A DNA stretch of 64,000 bases. It comes from Podarcis bocagei. Lineage: Eukaryota. The position numbers and the translations under genes were made by a program. Shown piece after piece: positions 739 through 64,000 of the stretch. The notes below the pieces were generated by a model. The model was given only the letters and a program-made list of their open reading frames with translations, searched no databases and was not told the DNA's origin. How positions within the stretch are numbered: position 1 is the stretch's first letter; every line of letters begins with the position of its first letter. The stretch lies in assembly GCA_964188305.1 (NCBI GenBank), contig OZ076887.1; one strand, written 5' to 3'.

Positions 739-2716
739 TAGAATCATAGAATCATAGAGTTGGAAGAGACCACAAGGGCCATCGAGTCCAACCCCCTGCC
801 AAGCAGGAAACACCATCAGAGCACTCCTGACATATGGTTGTCAAGCCTCTGCTTAAAGACCTCCAAAGTAGGAGACTCCACCACACTCCTTGGCAGCAAA
901 TTCCACTGTCGAACAGCTCTTACTGTCAGGAAGTTCTTCCTAATGTTTAGGTGGAATCTTCTTTCTTGTAGTTTGGATCCATTGCTCCGTGTCCGCTTCT
1001 CTGGAGCAGCAGAAAACAACCTTTCTCCCTCCTCTACGTGACATCCTTTTATATATTTGAACATGGCTATCATATCACCCCTTAACCTCCTCTTCTCCAG
1101 GCTAAACATGCCCAGCTCCCCTAGCTGTTCCTCATAAGGCATCGTTTCCAGGCCTTTGACCATTTTGGTTGCCCTCCTCTGGACACGTTCCAGTTTGTCA
1201 GTGTCCTTCTTGAACTGTGGTGCCCAGAACTGGACACAGTACTGCAGGTGAGGTCTGACCAGAGCAGAATACAGTGGCACTATTACTTCCCTTGATCTAG
1301 ATGCTATACTCCTATTGATGCAGCCCAGAATTGCATTGGCTTTTTTAGCTGCCGCGTCACACTGTTGGCTCATGTCAAGTTTGTGGTCAACCAAGACTTC
1401 TAGATCCTTTTCACATGTACTGCTCTCAAGCTAGGTGTCACCCATCTTGTATTTGTGCCTCTCATTTTTTTTGCCCAAGTGCAATACTTTATATTTCTCC
1501 CTGTTAAAATTCATCTTGTTTTTGCCCAGTTCTCTAATCTGTCAAGGTCGTTTTGAAGTGTGATCCTGTCCTCTGGGGTGTTAGCCACCCCTCCCAGTTT
1601 GGTGTCATCTGCAAATTTGATCAGGATGCCCTTGAGTCCATCATCCAAGTCGTTGATAAAGATGTTGAATAAGACCGGGCCCAAGACAGAACCCTGTGGC
1701 ACCCCACTAGTCACTCTTCTCCAGGATGAAGAGGAACCATTGATGAGCACCCTTTGGGTTCGGTCAGTCAGCCAGTTACAAATCCACTGAGTGGTAGCAT
1801 AGTCAAGACCACATTTTACCAGCTTCTTTACAAGAATATCATGGGGCACCTTGTCAGATGCCTTGCTGAAATCAAGGTAGGCTACATCCACTGTGTTCCC
1901 TTCATCTACCAGGCTTGTAATTCTGTCAAAAAACGAGATCAGGTTAGTCTGACATGACTTATTTTTCAGAAATCCATGCTGACTATTGGTGATCACAGCA
2001 TTCCTTTCTAGGTGCTCACAGACTGTTTGCTTAATGATCTGCTCCAGAATCTTCCCTGGTATTGATGTCAGACTGACTGGGCGGTAATTATTTGGGTCCT
2101 CTCTTTTCCCCTTTTTGAAAATAGGGACAACATTTGCCCTCCTCCAGTCTGCCGGAACTTCGCCTGTTCTCCAGGAATTCTCAAAGATGACTGCCAGTGG
2201 TTCTGAGATCACATCTGCCAGTTCTTTTAATACTCTTGGATGCAGTTCATCTGGCCCTGGAGACTTGAATACATCTAAACTAGCCAAGTATTCTTGTACT
2301 ATCTCCTTAGTTATTCTGGGCTGTGTTTCCTTTGCTGAATCATTTGCTCCAAATTCTTCAGGTCGGGCATTGTTTTCTTTATCGGAGAAGACTGAGGCAA
2401 AGAAGGCATTGAGGAGTTCAGCCCTTTCTGTGTCCCCTGTTTGCATTTCACCATCTTCTCCTCTGAGTGACCCCACTGTTTCTTTGTTCTTCCTTTTGCT
2501 ACGGCCATACCCATAAAAGCCTTTTTTGTTGCTTTTAACCTCTCTAGCAAGCCTGAGTTCATTCTGTGCTTTAGCTTTTCTGACTTTGTGTCTACACGTG
2601 CTGGCTATTTGTTTGAATTCCTCTTTGGTGGTTTCCCCCCTTTTCCATTTTTTGTACACATCCTTTTTTAATCTTAACTCAGTTAAAAGTTCTTTAGATA
2701 GCCACCCTGGCTTCTT
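739..2716 (-). mobile_element. CR1 LINE, 5'-truncated; ORF2 RT with one frameshift and one stop
   Basis: ORFs 1511-2659 and 816-1394 contain [52 protein letters not shown]; 3' (ATTCTATG)n tail; frameshift near 1520 and TAG near 1431. Confidence 0.95.
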
Positions 2717-3754: not shown

Positions 3755-6324
3755 AACATATGGGTCTGGCCCAGGTTATATGGCTCTGCTTTTTGCTTTT
3801 AAAATGGTATCCTAAGGAATTGCTTAAAAAAATGTACAAACCATTTAAAAAAGAATCAGAGGTAATCTCACATCAGGGCAACATTCCAAAATTGGACTCA
3901 GATTCTTCATTAGTACCTCATGGAGCTTCATCTCCTTGACAGTATCTATCAGTACAGAGACTCCTTGGTAGCAGGTCACGCGACGGCAGTCATTTTAAAC
4001 AATTTAATCAAGGATAGATTTCTCTAGAGAGCACTAGATGTGTCTGCTACGTCTCACTTGAATTCCAAACACGTCTTACTCTAGGTACACAATAAAAAAA
4101 GTTGAAATGGTAAGGGAATCCACTGACATGGGAAAAGATGAAAGGCAAGGGAGGTATACAGTGCATATTGTCAAGTCTTTCAGCATTTTAAAGAACAGCA
4201 GGGCAGAGTCATGCTAAAGTATGATGATGACATTGAAATTTTGGTTTAAAAGGCTGCCCTGGCTAAAGTTCTAAGAAATATGAGAATGTTGCAAAGCACA
4301 CCTTTCTCTGAAATTCAATTGCTAAGAATTAAATCCATAATATTTTCTCTAAAGGTGCATGAAAAATAGTCTAGTATAGGTGTTTTAGGAGTAGGAGTTC
4401 CTGGCAAGGCTACGCCGTAGACAGCTGACAGAAGGGAGTCAGGGCGAAGGAATTAAATGAAGAATAAAAGCTGACAAACAGACCAAGAAGACCACTGTTT
4501 CTCAGGCAAAAATCTCAGTTCAAAATAGGCAAGACTACCTGACGCCTGAGAACATTTCACTGCACAGGAAGATGCTCCAGTGTGAAATTTTGGTGGCACT
4601 TCCCTATAGAACCAAAGGCTCAAGTCAGTCCCCCAGCAACAATGTCATCAGGTTCCACTATGGCTGGAAAGGGTCTGACCATTAAGAAAGCCCTCCTGAC
4701 TTCACGAGAGAATGTCCCAGAGGGAGAGGCCCAGGCAAAAAAGCAGCATGGTGCACCACTTCAGCAGCCACCCTCGCAGCATGAAATGGAAAAACGCCCC
4801 ACACATTTCTGCAACATCTTCTGGGAACCTTGCCATTTCATGCAGGGGAGGATGTTGCCTGCTCAAAAACAGGAATCAATTACCTTTTGTCCTTGGCAGT
4901 GCCACATCCCAAACTAGTTGTCTGAGAAGCAGTGTTACCCAGGAAAAAGAAGAAAGAGTGTGTGACACTCCACTCCTGATCCTGTAAACGCCACTCACAG
5001 CTGTGCTTAGGAAAAGACTGTAGGAGCAGATTGAAATAGCTGGCCAAGTTGGTTTTAGGCTGCAAGCTGACAGTGAGCCGTACCTGGCCTTCGGGGTAGA
5101 AAGCAAGGCTGTGCCTCAGAGGTCACAGCTGCAGACATAATTTTCCAGTCAACAGGCTACATTTCATTTCTTTGCTATAAAGTCAGGGGAACTGTGTTTC
5201 TTGCCTAGGATTTTATGGCCAACATCTAGAGCTCCAGTTAACAATGATATGTTAGGACAGAGAATAATCGACCATCATGTCTTTGTCATTCTACATGTTT
5301 TGTTTGTGTGTTTGAAATGTTGCATCGTTACTGAATGATTGATTGATTGATTGATTGATTGCATTCATGCATTGTCCCGATAGCTGACAACTGGGAGTTA
5401 TATGCATTCCTAATATAAGAAGAAATTAAATGGATACTGGATTGTGTTCCAATCATTCAGCCACAATCGATCAGAAATAACAGTGTAGTTCAATATACCA
5501 CACTGTATTCTATGGCAATTAAAGAGCCAAACAGCCCTTATTTCCAGTGTCTCTGTTAGGACTAGACTTCATAACCCAAGTCCAAGGCCCTGCAGTCCCC
5601 AAACAACCGGCAGAGGAGACAACAGTGGCAGATGATGGGGCCAAGTGGAGCAGGTGCCTTAGCAGCAGACACGTCGTTGCACAACATGCCCACCTAAATG
5701 AAAAAAGGGCTGCAGTTGTTGGGAAACGGATATGGAGAGCAGATGAGAGCAACCAGGGAGGTTGTGACAGGAGGAGAGGGCAGTAGGGACCTGGGAAGAA
5801 AGAAAACATAGGGCAGCAGTGGGGCGGCCAGGACATGTGAAGGCAAGGGGAGCAGCCAAGAGGCACTCTACCCAGAGTCCTGTCAAACCCGGCACTGCCA
5901 CTGCTCATCTCCCCTTTCTTCTCAGCCTTCATTCCCATCCTACATTAGCAGTTCCATTGTTATGCAAAACGCTGACAATTCAGGGGTTATTACAATGTAA
6001 GATTATGGTGAAAAATTAATTAGTAACACTACAGTAATAGCAATGCTAATTAAAACATTAAAAACCTTGCCCATAGCAATAATGTATGAATAATGGCATT
6101 GAGGCTTGTGCCTCATATCAAAGATGTCCTCGTTCTAATTAAAAATGTTATGTTTTCCCAATCCTACAAACCAGCCAAATCAACTACTTATTAGAAATCA
6201 GCCACTTGTAATTGTAATATTTACATCTCTAGACAGACATGACTTTAGTAAGCTTTCAAGAAATCTTCCTATGGAACAATGATCTCTACCTGGAAACTGT
6301 TTCCTACCGTGATTTTTAAAACTT

Positions 6325-6560
6325 TGTTTATTACATTTATATCCTGCCTTTCCTGCAAGGAGCTAAGTGGCATATATGATTGTCTTCCCCTCACATACCC
6401 CTAATTTTATCCTTACAACAACCCTGTGAGGTAGGTTAGGCTGAGAAACAGTGACTGGCCCAACATTACCCAGTGAGTTTCATCATATGAGTAGGAAGTT
6501 GAACCTGCACACACACACACCCCACTACAGTTATAGTTTGTAACCACTAGACCACACTGA
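6325..6560 (-). mobile_element. Old CORE-type SINE (MIR/Squam3-like)
   Basis: tttatccttacaacaaccctgtgaggtaggttaggctgaga...gactggcccaa...taaccactagaccacactg. Confidence 0.65.
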
Positions 6561-17093: not shown

Positions 17094-18172
17094 TACAGTA
17101 AACTGTAAGGTAGGAAATATTTGGAGTGGGGTTGGAGGGGAAAACTGACAATTTGTCACTAGGAGCAGTTTAAGCTAAACTCTAAAGGAACACACCTCTT
17201 TACATTTTCTCATTCATTCCAATGGGGGATAGTAAAGTGATATACTTGGGCATAATGTTTCACCCATACACTGCACCCCACAAAACAATGCCCCTGAAAT
17301 ACATAGGCCCTTCTTCCACATATATATCTCCTGCTATAATGACGGTGGGGGGGGGGGAGACTGTTTCATCTGACAAGCTGAAATGCTTGCACTGACAGTA
17401 CATGGAACATAGCTGAATGTTGAATTCCTCCCACAACTTTTGTGGATGAAATATGACTCACACCTCATTCCATCAGTTTTATTATGATTATGTAACTACT
17501 AAATCCCAGGACATTAATATTTCAGGATTAAATTATACATATCTACTTTGCACTCTCAAATAAAGACTGCAATTTATAAACTGAAAAAACAACAAGCCAG
17601 GAATATGTAATAGAAGTTACTAAACTCTGAGCCATCACTGAAATAGTTAGAATTTTCTTAAAACACTGAAAAAAATCTAATAAATTAATGGCAGTGTTCC
17701 TACTTATTTCAACTTATCAGTTGTTGCAAAATAATGAGAATTATAAAATTAGCAGTAGTTTTGAGAATTTGTTAGTAAAAGTTACTCTTAAAAAAAATCA
17801 TTAAAAGATTAACCAGTTGCCCATTTTAGAGCATACTGTCAATTTTGACGTAGCTAATTCTGGAACTCACCGATATATTGTGGAACATATCATCATATAT
17901 CAACATGAGAAAAAACACAAAATATAAATGTATCTGCCAAACAGATTTTATTCGGCAGAAATATACAGGTTTCAAAAGAAAAATGCAAAGCATAAACCAT
18001 AAGATCATTTTTCCAGAAAGCAACACCTTATGGTGGATAGAATTTGTCTCTAATCGTTCCATGTCATTTTTCAATATCAGCATTTTATGCTATCATCGTT
18101 CTCATTTTTAATATGCCCATTCTTTGCTGCTTAAATTAAAAACAAAGAATTCAATTTTTTATATATATATAT

Positions 18173-19540
18173 ACACTATCTACCGGAAAAAAACACACAC
18201 CAACCGCTACTTACATGCACAATCACACCACCACCCTGCACAAATAAACTCCGTAGCCAAGACTCTCATCTCCAGAACCAAACGCCTGGCTGACAAAGAC
18301 CACTTGACAACTGAGTTACAGAATCTTTCAAATGTGTTAATCGCCAACGGATACCAGCAAAACAGGGTTACGAAGCTAATCCAAAAAGAAACACCCCCCA
18401 AAAACCAAGACACAGAAGAAAACAATGGCATGGCCCTCCTTCCTTATATCAAGGGCACTACAGATAAAATTAGCAAAATCCTCCATAAACACAATATCAA
18501 AACAGCCTTTTGCACCAACCAAAAAATAGCCAATATCCTCAGAAACCCCAAAGATAAAATCCAGTTAGAAAACCAAGGGGTCTATGAAATACCCTGCAAA
18601 GTCTGCCCAGCCACGTACATTGGACAAACAAACAGACGAATAAATGCACGTATCGCAGAACACAAGAATGCCGTCAAAAAAGAAGAAAAAACTTCCTCTC
18701 TTTACCAACACATGAAAGAAACAGGACACGAAATTAATTTTTCAGATTCCAAATTGCTCTTTAACACGGAACACCACCACAAGAGAATAATCATGGAAGC
18801 CATCGAGATAGAGAAACACCCTCACAACATGAACAAGCGTGACGATACGTCCCGCCTGCCAGACATCTGGAAAATAGCCCTCCCCACAAAAACCGACACC
18901 AGAACCAGAGGCACACAGAACGCCATCTCCAATCAACCACACCAGACCCAAACCCAGACCCTCTCCACAGATAAATTACAGACACCATCCAGTAGCCAAA
19001 CCATAGTGGCACCTCCGGATGCTGCACCCCCCTGCAATCCTTACACAGATCTGGCTGGCACAGGGCACAAAACCACAGCTCGCCCCTATACACGAAGCCA
19101 AGCCAGAGCACAACTAAGTGCAGTACAGCCATCTTCTCAGAAAAAACTCTTCACAAGCTCAAGAGGTCAAGACACGAAAGCTTTAGCAACTAATCCACAC
19201 CTAATGACCCTCCTAAGTGGTACTCAGAATATCACTCAAGAAATCACTCAAGATATCCCTCAAGTAATTAATGAACAAAAGAAGAAAAGACACACTAACC
19301 TGGGAACTTCCTCTCTGCCCAGAACGTTGGAGGCTATACACCACACCCCCTCAACAGTATTTATAGGAACTCAAACACTGAGATCCTGCTCTGTTCCAGT
19401 AACAAGAAGCCGAAAGCACCAGCCTGAAGATGACGAGTGAGACCTCGTCGAAACGTCGCCTAGACACCCCAACTCTTACACGGGAAGACACCCGAAGACA
19501 CCAAAACCTGCATTCCTGTACCCGTGAAAATCTACGAAAG

Positions 19541-19544
<4 letters not shown>
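18173..19544 (+). mobile_element. Penelope-like element, Poseidon-like, 5'-truncated, inserted in (TA)n
   Basis: Uninterrupted ORF to 19440: YRKKTHTNRYL...HH (RT C-terminal), LPYIKG, GIY-YIG nuclease GVYEIPC...YIGQT.R....RIAEH...E.IEI...MN; no CxxxxCxxC linker; TA repeats on both sides. Confidence 0.92.
19422..19459 (+). ncRNA. Minimal hammerhead ribozyme motif (weak stem I)
   Basis: gc-CTGAAGA-t-GACGAG-tgagac-CTCGTC-GAAA-CG-TC-gc. Confidence 0.7.

Positions 19545-19616
<72 letters not shown>
19545..19616. repeat. (TA)n microsatellite
   Basis: ~36 perfect TA units. Confidence 0.98.
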
Positions 19617-43715: not shown

Positions 43716-44348
43716 TATCTCATGTTGCATTTTTGCCTGTTTTACAGCTGTTAAAAGTAAAAATTTCTACCTGCAAAAAGCCCGACTTCTAGAAAGACTC
43801 ATCTGAAAGGCTGGGAAGATAGGTTTCTATGTAAACAGTAGCAGACTCAAAATATAACTGCCAGCTTGTCATACATATTTTTGGAAAGCTGGCTTATCTA
43901 GGCTGCTCCAATTAAAACAGAATCAAAACACATTGTTTTCCGTCTTTTTTCTATAGCTGGGGATATGCCTGTCAATTGACAGCTTAGTTTGCTATAATTT
44001 TGCCTGTTGTTGATTTGTTCTATTGATTGCAGGGTTGTGATGTTGTCAAGACACTTGGAATTTTGTAGAAGAAATAAAGATTGCTGGATAACCACACACA
44101 GAGAAGGCTTCCCACCATTGCTCTCGATTCAGAAAAAAGTTTCACATTTTTGCAACATCTAAAGATTATACAAAACAAATAGAATCTTAAATTAGAATTT
44201 TAATTAACTCTGCAATACTTAAATATACTAGTTTGGATATATAGAGCCCTTATTAAAATCAATGCAACTTATCTAAGAGTAAACAACTTCAGGATCTGGA
44301 CATTTATGTGAAATATAAAGATGTTTCAGTTTTACTAAATTTCTAATG

Positions 44349-46053
44349 CTATGTACGTGACACCACAGACTTTCTGAGGAAAATACAATCTTTAAATAAT
44401 CTTCCCAACAATACTATACTAGCTACTATGGATGTGGAATCTCTGTATACCAACATCCCACACAACGATGGTTTACAAGCTATAAGGAACACCATTTCAG
44501 ATAAAACCACAGCGGACCTTGCCACCAAACTCTGCCAATTTGTCCTTACCCACAACAACTTCAAATTCGGTGATGACCTGTTCCTTCAGATCAGCGGCAC
44601 AGCAATGGGCACCCGCATGGCCCCACAGTATGCCAACATCTTCATGGCAGATTTAGAACAACGTTTCCTAAACTCCTACCCACTCAAACCTCTCTTGTAC
44701 CTGCGATACATTGATGATATTTTTATCATCTGGACACATGGTCAACAGACCCTGGTCACCTTTCACCAGAAATTTAATGATTTTCACCCCACAATCAACC
44801 TAACAATGAATCAATCCATACAAGAAATACATTTTTTGGACACTACTATAAAAATACAGGATGGGCGCATAGACACCACCTTATACCGTAAACCAACTGA
44901 CCGACAAACATATCTACATGCCTCTAGCTACCATCCCAAACATACCAAACAGTCCATTGTATATAGCCAGGCACTACGTTACAGCCACATCTGTTCCAAT
45001 TCTACAGACAGAGACTCTCACCTAAGAGATCTACAGCAAACCTCTTTAGAACTAAAATACCCAGCAGATGAAGTTAGACAACAGATCAACAGAGCCAGAC
45101 TGATACCCAGAGAGAACTTGCTGCAAGACAGACCCAAAAAAGAAAACAACAGAACACCTCTAGTCATCACATACAGCTCCCAAGTTAAAACAGTACAACA
45201 CATCATCAGAGATCTACAACCTCTCCTGGACAATGACAGTTCTCTTTCTCAAGCTCTGGGAGGAAGACCTTTCATTGCCTACAGACAGCCACCCAATCTT
45301 AAACAACTCCTAACCCACAATAATACTACTACCAGACTTAACACGGACACTGGCACCAGAGCCTGCAATAAACCCAGATGCCAACTTTGCTGCCACATAC
45401 ACCCGGACAACACCATTACTGGCCCCAACAACATCACACATACCATCTCGGGACTATTTAATTGCTCATCATCTAACATTGTGTATGCCATCAAATGCCA
45501 ACAGTGTCCTTCAGCTCTCTATATTGGACAAACAGGCCAAACCTTACGCCAAAGAATAAACGGACATAAATCTGACATCAAGAATCACAAAACAGAGAAA
45601 CCAGTAGGAGAACACTTCAATCTCCCAGGACATTCTATACAAGATCTCAAAGTAGCTGTTTTACTACAAAGGAATTTCAGAAATAGACTGGAAAGAGAAG
45701 CTGCTGAATTGCAACTCATTACCAAACTCAAAACCATGGAGAGACCTGGTTTGAACAAAGACATTGGATTCTTATCTCATTATACATGACTAAGCCATTT
45801 TTCACCTTCTCACCCCTTGCCTTTTCCTGGAAGACCTATTGCAGTCGTTAAGAGTCGTCAACAGGCTCATCTCAGCTATCTGCCAATCACCCATTCCCAC
45901 CACCCTTCTGAGTAATACCCCTCCCCACCTTCTCACTATATAGAAGGACCTGGCAACTTCTGTTTCAGTGTATCTGAAGAAGTGTGCATGCACACGAAAG
46001 CTCATACCAAGAACTAACTTAGTTGGTCTTTAAGGTGCTACTGGAAGGAATTT
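44349..46053 (+). mobile_element. Penelope-like element, Neptune-like, 5'-truncated; open RT plus GIY-YIG ORF
   Basis: Frame open ~44350-45789: DVESLYTNI, GTAMG, YLRYIDD, FLD, CNKPRCQLC linker, IVYAIKC...YIGQT...R..GH...HF...E...GLN; 13-bp TSD TAAATTTCTAATG (44336-44348, 46054-46066). Confidence 0.95.
45970..46007 (+). ncRNA. Minimal type I hammerhead ribozyme in PLE terminal repeat
   Basis: GTAT-CTGAAGA-a-GTGTGC-at-GCACAC-GAAA-GC-TC|ATAC; stem I GTAT/ATAC; predicted cleavage after 46003. Confidence 0.88.
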
Positions 46054-48189
46054 TAAATTTCTAATGTGTAAGATCTTTTCTCTTCAGAATCTAATCTGGT
46101 TCCTCTTCTCATATTTTTCTTTCTCTTAAAGAAATAGATATTTATAATTTCTGTTTTACAGATGAGATTTCCATATATGACCATATTTACAAGCTTGAAG
46201 GAAATTGATCAATAAATAACAGAACAATTCAGATATGGCCTAAATCCAACACAGGTAACTGTTTAAGTCCACTGGAGGTCAATAGGCTTAACCATGCCTA
46301 ACTGTTATGAATTTAGGCCTATATTTATTGATCGATTTGGATTCCAGTGACTGAGAAGGATGACGTTTCCTTGGTTTTATTGATTATCCCAGAACATGAA
46401 GAATATGGAATACCTTCATAATGGAATAGAGGTGGGATGGTGGACATTTTTCAGTCCAAATGTCACATTCCCCCATGAGCAACCTTCACGGGTTGCATGC
46501 TAGGAATGGGCAGCACCAGAAGCATATCCAGTAATAGATATGACATTCCAGGCCTGCAAAAGTCAGGGGTATCTATACATAACATGCTCAACTCCATCCT
46601 GGCCCGCATGAAGCAGTCACAGCTAAGCACTCAAGGAGGTGGTGGAGCAAGCCTAGCTAGCATGGGATGGGGTTGAGGCCTAGAGAGACACCTAAAGCCT
46701 ACGTAGGGTGGAGGGACACATTCTGCCCTGTGCCTGAGATTTCTCATTCCTGGAACGGAAAACCGTTACTAATATTTCAATTTACAGACAGAAAACCAAG
46801 GATGGAAAAGAAGCAACTTCCGCAAGCCACTCAGCATGTCTATGGCCCAGTAAAGATCTAAAGGCAAGTCTCTCAGAACAAATGTTATTACTCTGTCAGC
46901 TGGACTGCCTAATGAAGTAAATGGAGCAACTCAGTTGGACGAGTTGTGCATGCATGTCTACCCCGGAGAGGTCAAACTTATTCCTACTAAATATACAAAC
47001 CATCCTGTACCACAATGCAAACCTCCTGCTCTGGCACCATATATTGCACTGTATTCAACATACAGTACACAAAATGGTGTGACAATTGCAAGCCAAATGA
47101 CATTGGGAAAGTTCTACTGAATGGCTAATAATCATCATTGACTGCAAAACCAATTTGCAGCATTTCTTCCAGCTTCTAAGCTTTGCTTCTCAGCCTCTCC
47201 TGCACTGATGTCTCTGTCTCTCTATATATACATCCTAAGAAGCGGAGTTACAGTGTCACTGTTATCTGTCACAAGAGGAGAGATTGTCAATAACTCTCCT
47301 GCTCAGTTGGTCCAATCACATCACATCAGTGAGCACATTTCCATTTCAAAAATTGCTGCTGGTGTTGAAGTTACTTCAAAAGAGACACAAGCACTGCTGC
47401 ACAGTATGAATTGGTATGAAAATGCCAACCTGACATGGCATGTTCCTGGATGTTTCAGACAGATTTTTCCAGATACATTTAGTTAAAATTGTATTTTAGG
47501 TTTGAAAAATAACTACATGTTCATCACTGAGCCAAATTGCCTTTTGCCTTGAGCCCAGAAGACATGGGCCTTTAATCATCCTCCAGTAGTTTATAGAGTA
47601 GGTTTTCAGTGAAATAAGCTTATTTGGTTTAGCTTGACAGCCACGGAATTACGCTTTGCACAATAAAGAGAAAAGATATTTTATTATCTGTTAGCTATGG
47701 CAAGCTTTCACTCACTGGTCAAAGATGAAGAACCAACCAGAGGTTTTCACTAACCCATACCAACAATCCATTTTGCAAGAAAATGGTCTGAATCAAGAGC
47801 CATGCTGTGGTCCATGGAGTTAATGAAATGCCAACATAGTATCACTTTTGGAAGCATTTAATTTTGAGAACAAATAACGGGTGAGCACAACTGGGTAAGA
47901 AAAAAGGAAATGGAAAAGATTCTCGGCCACTGAGCTATTACTGCTGTTGTTAAGGGAAAAGGATGGACACTGTCAAGGATGACAGTGTGTGTGTGTGTAC
48001 ATGTATTTATAGGACACTGCACTCTCATGTGTACCGTACCATAAGAGCTGGGAAATCTGTGGCCCTCCAGATGTTGTTGGCCTCCACCGGTCATGGATGA
48101 TGGGAGTTGTAGTACAACAACATCCAGATGGCATCAGGTTTCCCACCACTGCAGTACATAAATTGAAGTGAATAGAATAGAATAGCAGA

Positions 48190-50359: not shown

Positions 50360-51522
50360 CAGTGGTGCCCCGCAAGACGAAATTAATTCGTTCCGCAAGT
50401 TTTGTCGTCTAGCGAATTTTTCGTCTTGCGAATCACGAAATCCCATAGGAATGCATTGAAAATCAATTAATGCGTTCCTATGGTCAAAAAAAGTCCAAAC
50501 AAAGCCAAATTTGGTACAACAACAGTTTATTAACTGCTCTTTAAAGTCACACATACTGTAAAGAGCAGTTCAAAAATTGAAGGGAAAATAAATTAACTTT
50601 ATAAACATGACAGAAAAACATTTAAAAATCAACAAAGTGTACAGTACATTTTCTAAGACTCTGGGGGACCACTCGAAGAAGGCTCCTCTTCCACTCTTTG
50701 CTTCTTGCTGAAGAACCCCCTCCTCAACTGTTCCCCCAGCCACCCACCACACAGAAATTCAAATCCAGATTTTTTTTAAAAAAAGAGCAGAGTGGCCCAA
50801 TGGTCACAGAAAATCATAAAAATGCAGAAAAAAACACACAAGCTTCCAGATTCTTGCAAACCCCTCCTCAACTGTTCCCCCAGCCACCCAGCACACAGAA
50901 ATTCAAATCCAGATTTTTTTTAAAAAAAGAGCAGAGTGGCCCAATGGTCACAGAAAATCATAAAAATGCAGAAAAAAACACACAAGCTTCCAGATTCTTG
51001 CAAACCCCTGCCCAACTGTTCCCCCAGCCACCCAGCACACAGAAATTCAAATCCAGATTTTTTTTTGAAAAAACAGCAGAGTGCCCCAATGGTCACAAAA
51101 AATCATAAAAATGCAGAAAAAAACACACAAGCTTCCAGATTCTTGCAAACCCCTCCCCAACACCAAGTCCTTGAATTCCAAACACCCCAACCCAAAATCC
51201 AAAACCCCCCAAAAAAGTTTTAAAAACTTAACTTACCAAATGGCTGCAAAAGAAGTTCTGGAAAAGCTTCAAAAATCACCAAAGTCTTTAAAAACCTCAA
51301 AAAAGGCTACTATGTACACTGCGTTCTATGAGTTGCTCCTCGAAGTCAAGTCGCAACTGTATTAAAGGTGTTAAGAAAAAGGAAACAAACTTGCAAGACG
51401 TTTTCGTCTTGCAAAGCAAGCCCATAGGGAAATTCGTCTTGCGAGGCAACTCGAAAACGGAAAAACCTTTCGTCTAGCGAGTTTTTTGTCTTGCGAGGCA
51501 TTCGTCTTGCGGGGCACCACTG
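50360..51522. mobile_element. 1.16-kb Tigger/pogo-like non-autonomous element (same TIRs as MITEs A/B)
   Basis: TA-CAGTGGTGCCCCGCAAGACGAA ... TTCGTCTTGCGGGGCACCACTG-TA. Confidence 0.9.
50717..51158. repeat. ~144-bp tandem repeat, 3 copies
   Basis: Units start at 50717, 50861 and 51005; nearly identical. Confidence 0.95.
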
Positions 51523-56988: not shown

Positions 56989-57567
56989 CCGTATTTTTCG
57001 CCCTATAGGACGCACTTTTTCCCCTCCAAAAATGAAGGGAAAATGTGGGTGCGTCCTATGGGGTGAATGCAGGCTTTCACTGAAGCCTGGAGAGCGAGAG
57101 GGGTTGGTGCGCACCGACCCCTCTCGCTCTCCAGGCTTCAGGAGAGCCCCAGCGCCAGCCCCACAAGGTCGGGGGACAGAGGGAGGCGGAACGCCGCCAT
57201 CCCGCTGTCTCCCGAAGTGGTTTGGAGGCTGACGGCGGGGAGAAGAGCGCTTCTCCCTGCTGCCTGCCCCACCACTCCGGGGACGGCAGGAAGACGCAGC
57301 GCGTCTCCAGGCTCTCCCCGGACCTGATCTCAAGGCGGGCGGCGGGGAGAAGAGCGCTTCTCCCCGCTGCCTGCCCCACCACTCCGGGGACAGCAGGGAG
57401 ACGCAGCGCGTCTCCAGGCTCTCCCCGGACCTGATCTCAAGGCGGGCGGCGGGGAGAAGAGCGCTTCTCCCCGCTGCCTGCCCCACCACTCCGGGGACAG
57501 CAGGGAGACGCAGCGCGTCTCCAGGCTCTCCCCGGACCTGATCTCAAGGCGGGCGGCGGGGAGAAGA
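56989..57567. mobile_element. Truncated CCGTATT-type Tc1/mariner-pogo non-autonomous element with GC-rich tandem array
   Basis: TA-ccgtatttttcgccctataggacgcac left terminus; no right TIR found. Confidence 0.75.
57234..57567. repeat. 107-bp GC/CpG-rich tandem repeat, 3 copies plus partial
   Basis: Units start at 57234, 57341, 57448 and 57555; units 2 and 3 read identical. Confidence 0.95.
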
Positions 57568-62310: not shown

Positions 62311-63737
62311 TATTCAAAAGTCCCACCAAATTTATTGGAACTTCCTAGCCAATGATTCCCCTCACCTGCATTAGAATAACAGCCACCTCTGCTTATAGCA
62401 GGAAATGAGAGCAAACCACATCTTATGCAATACCATCATATCCCCTGTTGACTTTCAATCATGAACCGATTTCCCATATCCTTATAACTTCTCTTAAAGG
62501 ACTGTTAAAAGCTTAGCCTACTTATGGTAGAAGATTTTACACTCTATATAAACTGAAGTATAGCTCTGCCAAAACTGATTATACATATAGTACAGATTAA
62601 GGAGGAAAGAGAAACCACTACTTGTTGACTTTAATGGTAAAAAATATTCCATCATGCTATGCGTAGGGAGGAAATTACACTTTACTATAACTGGCTGTAT
62701 TGATCCAAGGCTCACAACATATAAAAGAACCAATCTTGGAAGCTAGAGATAGCCTTGTTCTGTAATATAGAATGGAGCTATTACAGCGAGCTTTCGGCTA
62801 TCTATCAGTCTGAGATATAACACGCTCTGGCTGTTTATGTGTATTTATAAGTACAAAAGTGACTCAAACCTATCCTTATTAGCTATGGAATCTAAACTAC
62901 AACATGCTGTCATACTTGGGTCTATAAGCAAATCCTCTTCATTCAGGCATATCCCGAATCACAAATTGTAATATACACCAATTTTCAGAAAACTGTTGCG
63001 AAGAATATTTATACTCCAGGCAGATTATAAATCAAAACAAAGCATAAAGATATCCTATCCAAGATGTAAAGAGACTCTGAATAATGTAGGACTTTGAAAG
63101 CAAGGACATGATACAACTGGGTGTGTGATACAAACAAGAACAAAATTAATTGACAGCAGGAGAGGCATGGGTCAGAATGATAAGAGGAAGAGAGATTATA
63201 AATAGGAACACATGTTTTGAAAAAGCCATTGTTAGCATTGAAATTGCTTAAGGACCGTTACTGAAACAGGAGGTGTTTAAGCCATGGAAAATATATTTAA
63301 GGATAAAAATAAATACATCAAAACTGTAATGAAAAGACTCCCCAACTGTGAAGATAAATGAAAATCCACAACAGAAGCAAATATGAAATCAGGTAATGTT
63401 AGACTCCGGACATTACAAAAAGTCTGCTCCTTACTATTACAACGTGCCACAAAACTAAAAGATATGTGCTTAAGCTTCCATCTAAACAAATAGTGCTTTA
63501 ATTGATCCACCAATTACTCCTGATATCCCAACTCAGAATGTTTGTTATATAAATTTATTGCATTTGATTCCTCGATTTACCTTACATTGCATGTGTCCAG
63601 GAAATCTATACCTACTATAATCTGCACCTGAAAACTACCCTTTCTTCCTAGCAGAATCCTTGGTCTCTTCTACAATCAGACTAGATTACCGTAAATTAGC
63701 ACACAAAGGGCCTCATGTCTTAACTTTCCCTATGCTT

Positions 63738-63874
63738 CTAGATACAGGTAGGTAGCCATGTTGGCTGACACAGTCAAAATAAATAAATAAATAAAATAAA
63801 TAATAGTCCAGTAGCACCTTAGAGACCAACTAAGTTTGTTCTGGGTATACCAGAACAATTTATTTATTTAATTA
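63738..63874 (-). mobile_element. Mini-insertion derived from the Neptune-like PLE terminal repeat
   Basis: 13-bp TSD TTTCCCTATGCTT (63725-63737, 63875-63887); minus strand 63848-63807 matches 46004-46045 at 39/42 nt. Confidence 0.88.
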
Positions 63875-64000
63875 TTTCCCTATGCTTTTCAGCCATGTCT
63901 GTAAAAGAACATTCATATCTAACTCACTGGGAAAGCTGACTGCATTGAGAGTTCATACACCTCTGGGGGATGAGGTGGAGGGGAGATGTAAAAGGTCTAC

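Follow-up and report, generated by a model that had tools for sequence, protein, structure and literature searches.

A 137-bp insert lying close to the end of a 64,000-nucleotide stretch of Podarcis bocagei DNA (contig OZ076887.1 of assembly GCA_964188305.1, hereafter the window) is a target-primed insertion of a Penelope-like element (PLE) of the Neptune family, consisting of two arms hinged at position +1, i.e. the first nucleotide following the predicted cleavage site of the PLE hammerhead ribozyme. The insert is a fragment and not an element, and it is better read as a dead-end by-product of the PLE RT starting at internal sites near the 5' end of the transcript. Three further scars of this kind, in related lizards, point to cutting by the ribozyme of the RNA later copied into DNA, but do not prove it. 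The chances are about even that the template of the window insert was such a product, a PLE transcript stripped by self-cleavage of its first 36 nt (the hammerhead), with the RT running off the new end.

The features of the insert, of the Neptune-type copy of the window used for comparison, and of the arms starting at the cut in other loci are collected in Table 1. The first-pass annotation of this DNA had described a retro-insertion flanked by a 13-bp TSD, whose minus strand resembles the sequence located directly behind the predicted hammerhead cut of the Neptune copy, which lacks the catalytic core, and which is fused at the same junction with a short, head-to-head inverted and internally deleted copy. 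All these observations were reproduced; the two TSD copies are exact. A 13-mer repeat alone is weak evidence, since about five exact direct repeats of this length (60–300 bp spacing, outside tandem arrays), including the TSD, are present in the 64-kb window; the TSD flanks a transposon-homologous segment directly on either side. The homology between the insert and the Neptune copy ends at ATACC, upstream of which the former reads ..TGGT and the latter ..GCTC. The three mismatches in the 42-nt tail (63822, 63837, and 63843) occur in 25–75% of genomic copies and are subfamily variants, not decay. The long arm can be aligned from +1 to ca. +98 of the full PLE 3' ends in two other lacertid loci, L006 and L007. 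A pattern scan found no CTGANGA..GAAA core within or adjoining 63738–63874; this segment has no ORF either, and as nothing resembling a promoter was found in it, the insert is not taken for a SINE.

Table 1. Location of the two-armed insert and of the reference Neptune-type copy in the window, followed by arms starting at the predicted cut in the lacertid sample
Feature	Position	Strand	Remarks
Left TSD copy, 13 bp, TTTCCCTATGCTT	63725–63737		exact repeat of 63875–63887
Long-tail arm, 111 nt	63738–63848	-	from predicted hammerhead cut (+1 = 63848) to distal RT start site
Long-tail box, AC-rich, with ..CAACATGGCTACC.. motif	63738–63775	-	the optional 30–40 nt PLE 'tail'; homologous to arm ends in L003, L006, and L007
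A/T-rich (ATTT)n spacer	63776–63806	-	short-tail arms end in such a region
Conserved 42-nt tail box, immediately 3' of the cut	63807–63848	-	read from 63848 to 63807, 39/42 identical to post-cut Neptune sequence 46004–46045
Inverted stub arm, 28 nt	63847–63874	+	12 nt following the cut and 16 A/T-rich nt
Right TSD copy, 13 bp, TTTCCCTATGCTT	63875–63887		exact repeat of 63725–63737
Neptune-type PLE, 5'-truncated	44349–46053	+	comparison copy; ORF domains, linker, TSD
Pseudo-LTR TATA box	45937–45943	+	31 nt 5' of GTGTATC (45968), 67 nt 5' of the cut
Minimal type I hammerhead	45970–46007	+	core CUGANGA...GAAA and H17 at 45974–46003; cut 46003/46004
Window insert, both arms			start at +1
L003 (Zootoca), both arms			start at the cut within 2 nt; TSD 9 bp
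L006 (P. raffonei), short arm	6357 of L006		starts at +1 or -1
L007 (Zootoca), inverted 73-nt arm			starts at the cut; fused to a 1.3-kb Neptune copy

The stub repeats on the plus strand (63847–63858) the first 12 post-cut nucleotides in the opposite orientation, with one C missing, and shares with the long arm a 2-nt AT overlap (63847–63848). Its A/T-rich 16 nt (63859–63874) match the (ATTT)n region of the arm weakly (E=0.08), and about 35 nt are deleted internally. The insert displays a TSD of the variable length characteristic of PLE scars (13 bp here, 9–13 bp in related events), an inverted 5'-truncated copy at its 5' end, represented by the stub, and a tail at one end only, as the long arm reaches ca. 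+111 and the stub stops in the A/T-rich region.

The Neptune-type copy possesses its own 13-bp TSD (44336–44348 and 46054–46066), is truncated at the 5' side inside the ORF, and has a short tail, ending 50 nt past the cut. Its single ORF (44428–45789), whose product shares 99% identity with a PLE protein cluster of lacertids, codes for the RVT_1 domain (6e-9) followed by a C-terminal GIY-YIG (2e-5); the CX4CXXC linker of the Neptune clade is found as CNKPRCQLC in the translation of 45328–45600, in agreement with the CX2-5CxxC zinc-finger-like linker preceding the endonuclease that is ascribed to Arkhipova 2006 in PMC8557442. The hammerhead is built of helix I (GTAT/ATAC), CTGAAGA, a 14-nt palindromic helix II, GAAA, the AGCT palindrome of helix III, and C17, after which, between 46003 and 46004, cleavage is predicted from the hammerhead consensus. 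Compensatory changes are present in all three helices when lacertid copies are compared with those of gecko, agamid, and tortoise: helix I occurs as GTAT/ATAC, GCAT/ATGC, or ATGT/ACAT, helix II in four different versions, and the 4-nt helix III as AGCT or ACGT. It is the consensus together with these changes that fixes position +1. The Rfam hammerhead models matched nothing in the window and in its 45800–46150 segment, whether the gathering score was applied or hits up to E<=10 were accepted. This result is expected and uninformative, because a monomeric helix III is lacking in the minimal dimeric type (Cervera and de la Pena, PMC4209133) to which the ribozyme belongs. Two boxes located behind the cut, TAAGGTGCYAC and the AC-rich AACACGGCTACC, are conserved from lacertids to gecko, agamid, and tortoise (L008, 12087–12189 and 18589–18673; L009, 11233–11381; L010, 9339–9456), while the ribozyme helices covary; the boxes are candidate RT binding and initiation signals.

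PLE insertions are 5'-truncated, are often accompanied by an inverted 5'-truncated copy, and carry a tail of 30–40 bp at one end only (PMC8557442). For a PLE of an anole, the origin of the tail was assigned to two internal sites, located 3' of the hammerhead, at which the RT starts, and cutting and extension were observed on both strands of the target (PMC11167929). A similar asymmetry of the two arms is observed in L003 of Zootoca, L006 (two events), L007, and the tortoise locus L010: in these loci one arm stops in an A/T-rich stretch ca. 50–65 nt after the cut, and the other ca. 95–111 nt after it, beyond the AC-rich box. In the full-length tortoise copy the long-tail box sits just 5' of the ORF start. 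The window insert fits the tail rule, its long arm being the segment from the cut to the long tail and its stub an internally deleted segment from the cut to the short tail.

The first-pass annotation regarded the window insert as a single example, which is no longer the case, as three further independent insertions were found in Zootoca and Podarcis raffonei. The lacertid sample, ca. 240 kb in size, comprised the window and the loci L002–L007, of which L003, L004, and L005 are duplicates of one locus; it is a small sample, reached via relatives of the Neptune protein (PLE-related gene models), and hinge positions in it are uncertain by up to 2 nt. It contains seven independent tail-bearing events, and four of these, i.e. 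the window insert and those in L003, L006, and L007, have an arm starting at the cut (-2 to +1), each with a TSD of its own and with one long-tail and one short-tail arm. TC, the dinucleotide located before the cut, precedes the arm in both Zootoca loci, L003 and L007. The partner of the short arm in L006 retains 10–12 nt of the core. The Neptune copy joined to the inverted arm in L007 has its own 5' end in the ORF, so the inverted arm is not the mirror image of its partner. The other 5' ends are different. The mini-copy in L002 starts at the equivalent of 45969, the start predicted from the TATA box, and represents the class of ends expected for uncleaved RNA, while the window Neptune copy and a perfect 2,102-bp palindrome of L006 end inside the ORF. 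No cut-site ends were found in the five copies from gecko, agamid, and tortoise.

Several other features were observed in the window and in the related loci. The palindrome of P. raffonei (L006, 7807–12051) consists of two inverted 2,102-bp arms of a Neptune copy, 100% identical, separated by a 41-nt spacer, and flanked by an 11-bp TSD; one arm has a short tail, the other a long one, and the hinge lies inside the ORF. It is a very young head-to-head insertion. In the same locus an element of ca. 500 bp with AGTGGTACC.. TIRs (5857–6356) is inserted at the TATA-like centre of a PLE palindrome, the hinge of the event with the short arm at 6357. In Zootoca vivipara (L003, 10001–27889; L004; L005), a CARD domain is combined with a GIY-YIG part of Neptune origin in the gene models LOC132593050, LOC132593051, and LOC118078985, which lie in segmental duplicates sharing a palindromic PLE scar 1.7 kb upstream; a piece of a PLE may have become exonic here, or the annotation may be chimeric. 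The window itself carries at 18124–19547 (plus strand) a second, unrelated PLE of the Penelope/Poseidon type, with GIY-YIG in the ORF, in which the stop codon of the ORF is located in the helix II loop of the hammerhead (19424–19457). The end of this element, at a (TA)n microsatellite, lies ca. 90 nt past its cut, and the family has no further copy in the 304 kb compared. The window comprises also a fragment of a LINE-type RT ORF (1511–2659, minus strand), 98% identical to Podarcis muralis proteins and thus indicative of a Podarcis-like genome, and two tandem arrays detected from repeated exact 13-mers, 50717–51119 with a period of ca. 144 bp and the GC-rich 57233–57550 with a period of ca. 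107 bp.

The presence of the insert in relatives and its RNA were studied by aligning to 63400–64000 Logan contigs from two related species and, for one of these, a sister species, also RNA reads. In both species contigs span the right junction, with the stub already in its present form, and the left one is covered by short contigs only, below the 31-nt bridging rule. Empty orthologous sites, which the first-pass annotation had proposed to look for, were not seen in either of these species, as no read or contig skips the insert; this, together with the bridged right junction, indicates that the insertion is fixed in both and arose before they diverged. For the 42-nt tail, word depth adds up to ca. 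1.1–1.2 million, compared with 14–18 in the flanks, and the family therefore counts roughly 10^4–10^5 copies. The consensus of the ends clipped beyond 63848/63849, in DNA contigs as well as in RNA reads, is the reverse complement of the hammerhead core, which means that the family normally carries the core in the place where the insert is devoid of it. Scans with the tail-box pattern gave nothing in JGI metagenome contigs or IMG/VR contigs, and an nhmmer profile of seven short terminal fragments detected no further copies in the 304 kb compared.

The majority of the aligned sister-species RNA reads (406 of 552 and 324 of 467) cross the site uncleaved. No pile of read starts or ends was seen at the cut or at any other position in a test requiring one-fifth of the depth, with the tissue unspecified and both orientations equally covered; owing to this insensitivity, a cleaved minority may exist unseen. 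RNA-seq in Anolis was likewise negative (PMC11167929). An arm starts at +1 in two junctions seen in RNA reads, a loose end at 63839 (X23) and a joint 63829->63848 (X24), and the read alignment gave only one opposite-strand joint.

A course of events leading from a self-cleaved transcript to the window insert may be proposed. Self-cleavage would remove the first 36 nt of the PLE transcript, comprising the hammerhead, and the RT would start at internal sites just 3' of the cut and run off the 5'-OH end after ca. 50–110 nt. A staggered cut of the target gave rise to the 13-bp TSD, one arm extends from the distal RT start ('long tail', ca. +111) to +1 after the hammerhead cut, and the inverted short-tail arm is fused to it head-to-head via the 2-nt AT overlap, the usual layout of a PLE insertion; the two cDNA ends would have been joined once the RT had run off. 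Uncleaved RNA would yield core-bearing mini-copies. Since the RT starts internally just 3' of the ribozyme, a mini-product could come from any PLE transcript that has been cleaved, and neither a separate mini-element nor mobilisation in trans, as put forward in the first-pass annotation, is necessary. A family of promoterless mini-retroelements, named there as a possibility, is not supported as a self-propagating one, the copies having neither promoter nor ribozyme; the dead-end reading accounts for products without means of propagating. The third element of that proposal, the 3' self-cleavage product as the template, agrees with the 5' end lying at the predicted cut and recurring in three more insertions, and is weakened by the RNA being mostly uncleaved and showing no pile of ends. 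Cleavage is further favoured by the absence of the core from the insert and its presence directly upstream of the cut in the source family. It is disfavoured by the TC ahead of two of the arms (L003, L007), the piece of core kept by one arm of L006, the small sample, and the lack of cut-site ends in the outgroup copies, as well as by the finding that hammerhead cleavage is unnecessary in vitro and that no RNA-seq ends fall at the cut in Anolis (Frangieh et al., PMC11167929).

The main and serious rival to cleavage is a stall of the RT on uncleaved RNA, where the enzyme, having copied helix I, would halt at the folded, possibly protein-bound and dimeric, hammerhead, and the stalled cDNA end would be joined or snap back; we consider it possible, although rather unlikely. 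The TC preceding the arm in the two Zootoca cases also fits such a stall and is consistent with ends at -2, before the G–C pairs of the dimeric helix III, and one arm of L006 stops at the base of helix II. The prevalence of uncleaved RNA and the dispensability of the hammerhead in vitro (PMC11167929) point the same way. However, the end lies at +1, and not at -2, in the window insert as well as in the two RNA-read junctions, most genomic copies have the core in full, which shows that the RT as a rule copies past it, and the GA/TC of L007 is also a part of an adjoining 14-nt palindrome. Each of the remaining explanations is less likely than the stall. A coincidence of ordinary random 5' truncation with the usual PLE inverted duplication, the match to the cut site being accidental, seems quite improbable. 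Arbitrary 5' truncation is the rule among PLEs (PMC8557442) and is exemplified by the window Neptune copy and the long L006 palindrome, both truncated inside the ORF, but four independent insertions in three species and two RNA-read junctions fall within 4 nt of a position specified beforehand. With the insert that triggered the search excluded, the occurrence of three out of ca. 14 independent 5' ends in a window of 3–4 nt has P between 0.013 and 9e-7; when only the two cleanest cases are counted, P reaches up to 0.09, a value obtained under the most conservative null and dependent, like the others, on the counting and the null.

Transcription could alternatively start at ATACC, with no participation of the ribozyme, as TCATACC fits the initiator YYANWYY and the same DNA fossils would be expected. 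We regard it as very improbable, because the TATA box, located 67 nt upstream, predicts a start at ca. 45968, where the L002 copy does start, no pile of RNA read starts is present at the site, and a match to the initiator is found by chance about once per 128 nt. There is equally little likelihood that a longer palindrome with a core in each arm lost both cores later from its unstable centre. The stub arm has already lost ca. 35 nt internally, in line with such instability, but the loss would need to stop at +1 in each of the two arms, both here and a second time in L003, and the present structure is identical in two species.

A more far-reaching reading extends the self-cleavage explanation and treats the minimal hammerhead of EN+ PLEs as an in vivo end-defining device, acting through dimer cutting, double copying, and cDNA joining. 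According to it, two transcripts would pair through the palindromic helix III and both be cut, a dimeric RT-endonuclease would copy both 3' products off the two strands of one staggered break, and the ..GGTAT cDNA ends would anneal via their self-complementary AT, giving rise to head-to-head PLE scars. Taken jointly, these steps make a doubtful proposition.

Among known systems, the insert resembles most directly the insertions of EN+ PLEs of the Neptune and Penelope/Poseidon clades (Evgen'ev and Arkhipova 2005; Craig et al. 2021, PMC8557442; Frangieh et al. 2024, PMC11167929), with which it shares a variable TSD, head-to-head arms, a tail at one end, ends rich in A/T, and 3' boundaries at two sites located past the pLTR hammerhead; it differs from them in being devoid of coding sequence and of the hammerhead core and in having its hinge at the predicted ribozyme cut. 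The non-LTR retrotransposons R2, RTE, and L1Tc have a 5' self-cleaving ribozyme which determines where the RNA to be reverse transcribed begins, and the genomic 5' junctions therefore coincide with the cut (PMC3774820; PMC6765202). The nearest functional counterpart is the HDV-like ribozyme setting the R2 RNA 5' end (PMC3774820). The HDV-like ribozyme of those elements stays on the 3' product, whereas the hammerhead core lies upstream of the cut and is lost, and hence the products described here are capable neither of a second cleavage nor of propagation. Animal non-LTR retrozymes (Cervera and de la Pena 2020; Li, Clavereau and Pollet 2026, bioRxiv 10.64898/2026.07.22.740005) are, like the insert, short non-coding pLTR derivatives dependent on the PLE enzyme, with monomer copies dispersed in the genome. 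They are, however, composed of tandem hammerhead-bearing units and form circular RNA, and the insert, a single unit without a hammerhead, is ruled out as a retrozyme. The SINE-like elements Sm-alpha and Sj-alpha of Schistosoma (Ferbeyre 1998; Laha 2000), as far as they are presented in PMC6765202, are very abundant short retroposed units with a minimal type I hammerhead, which keep both the promoter and the ribozyme, and the insert has neither.

As a piece of an element of a known kind, the insert is ordinary; the clustering of arm 5' ends and hinges at the cut is unreported in PMC8557442 and PMC11167929. The hammerhead is found in nearly all endonuclease-positive PLEs, and its role is an open question (PMC8557442); in the only biochemical study it was dispensable in vitro, and no cleaved RNA was found in vivo (PMC11167929). 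If the ends and hinges truly cluster at the cut, genomes would already contain an extensive natural archive of cleavage in vivo, and a part of the tens of thousands of short PLE copies would be by-products of internal RT initiation. If the RT stalls on uncleaved RNA instead, the scars would map where the folded ribozyme blocks the polymerase. Were the hammerhead indeed an end-defining device, the short core-less palindromes would be its direct fossils, and the PLE hammerhead would gain its long-sought function.
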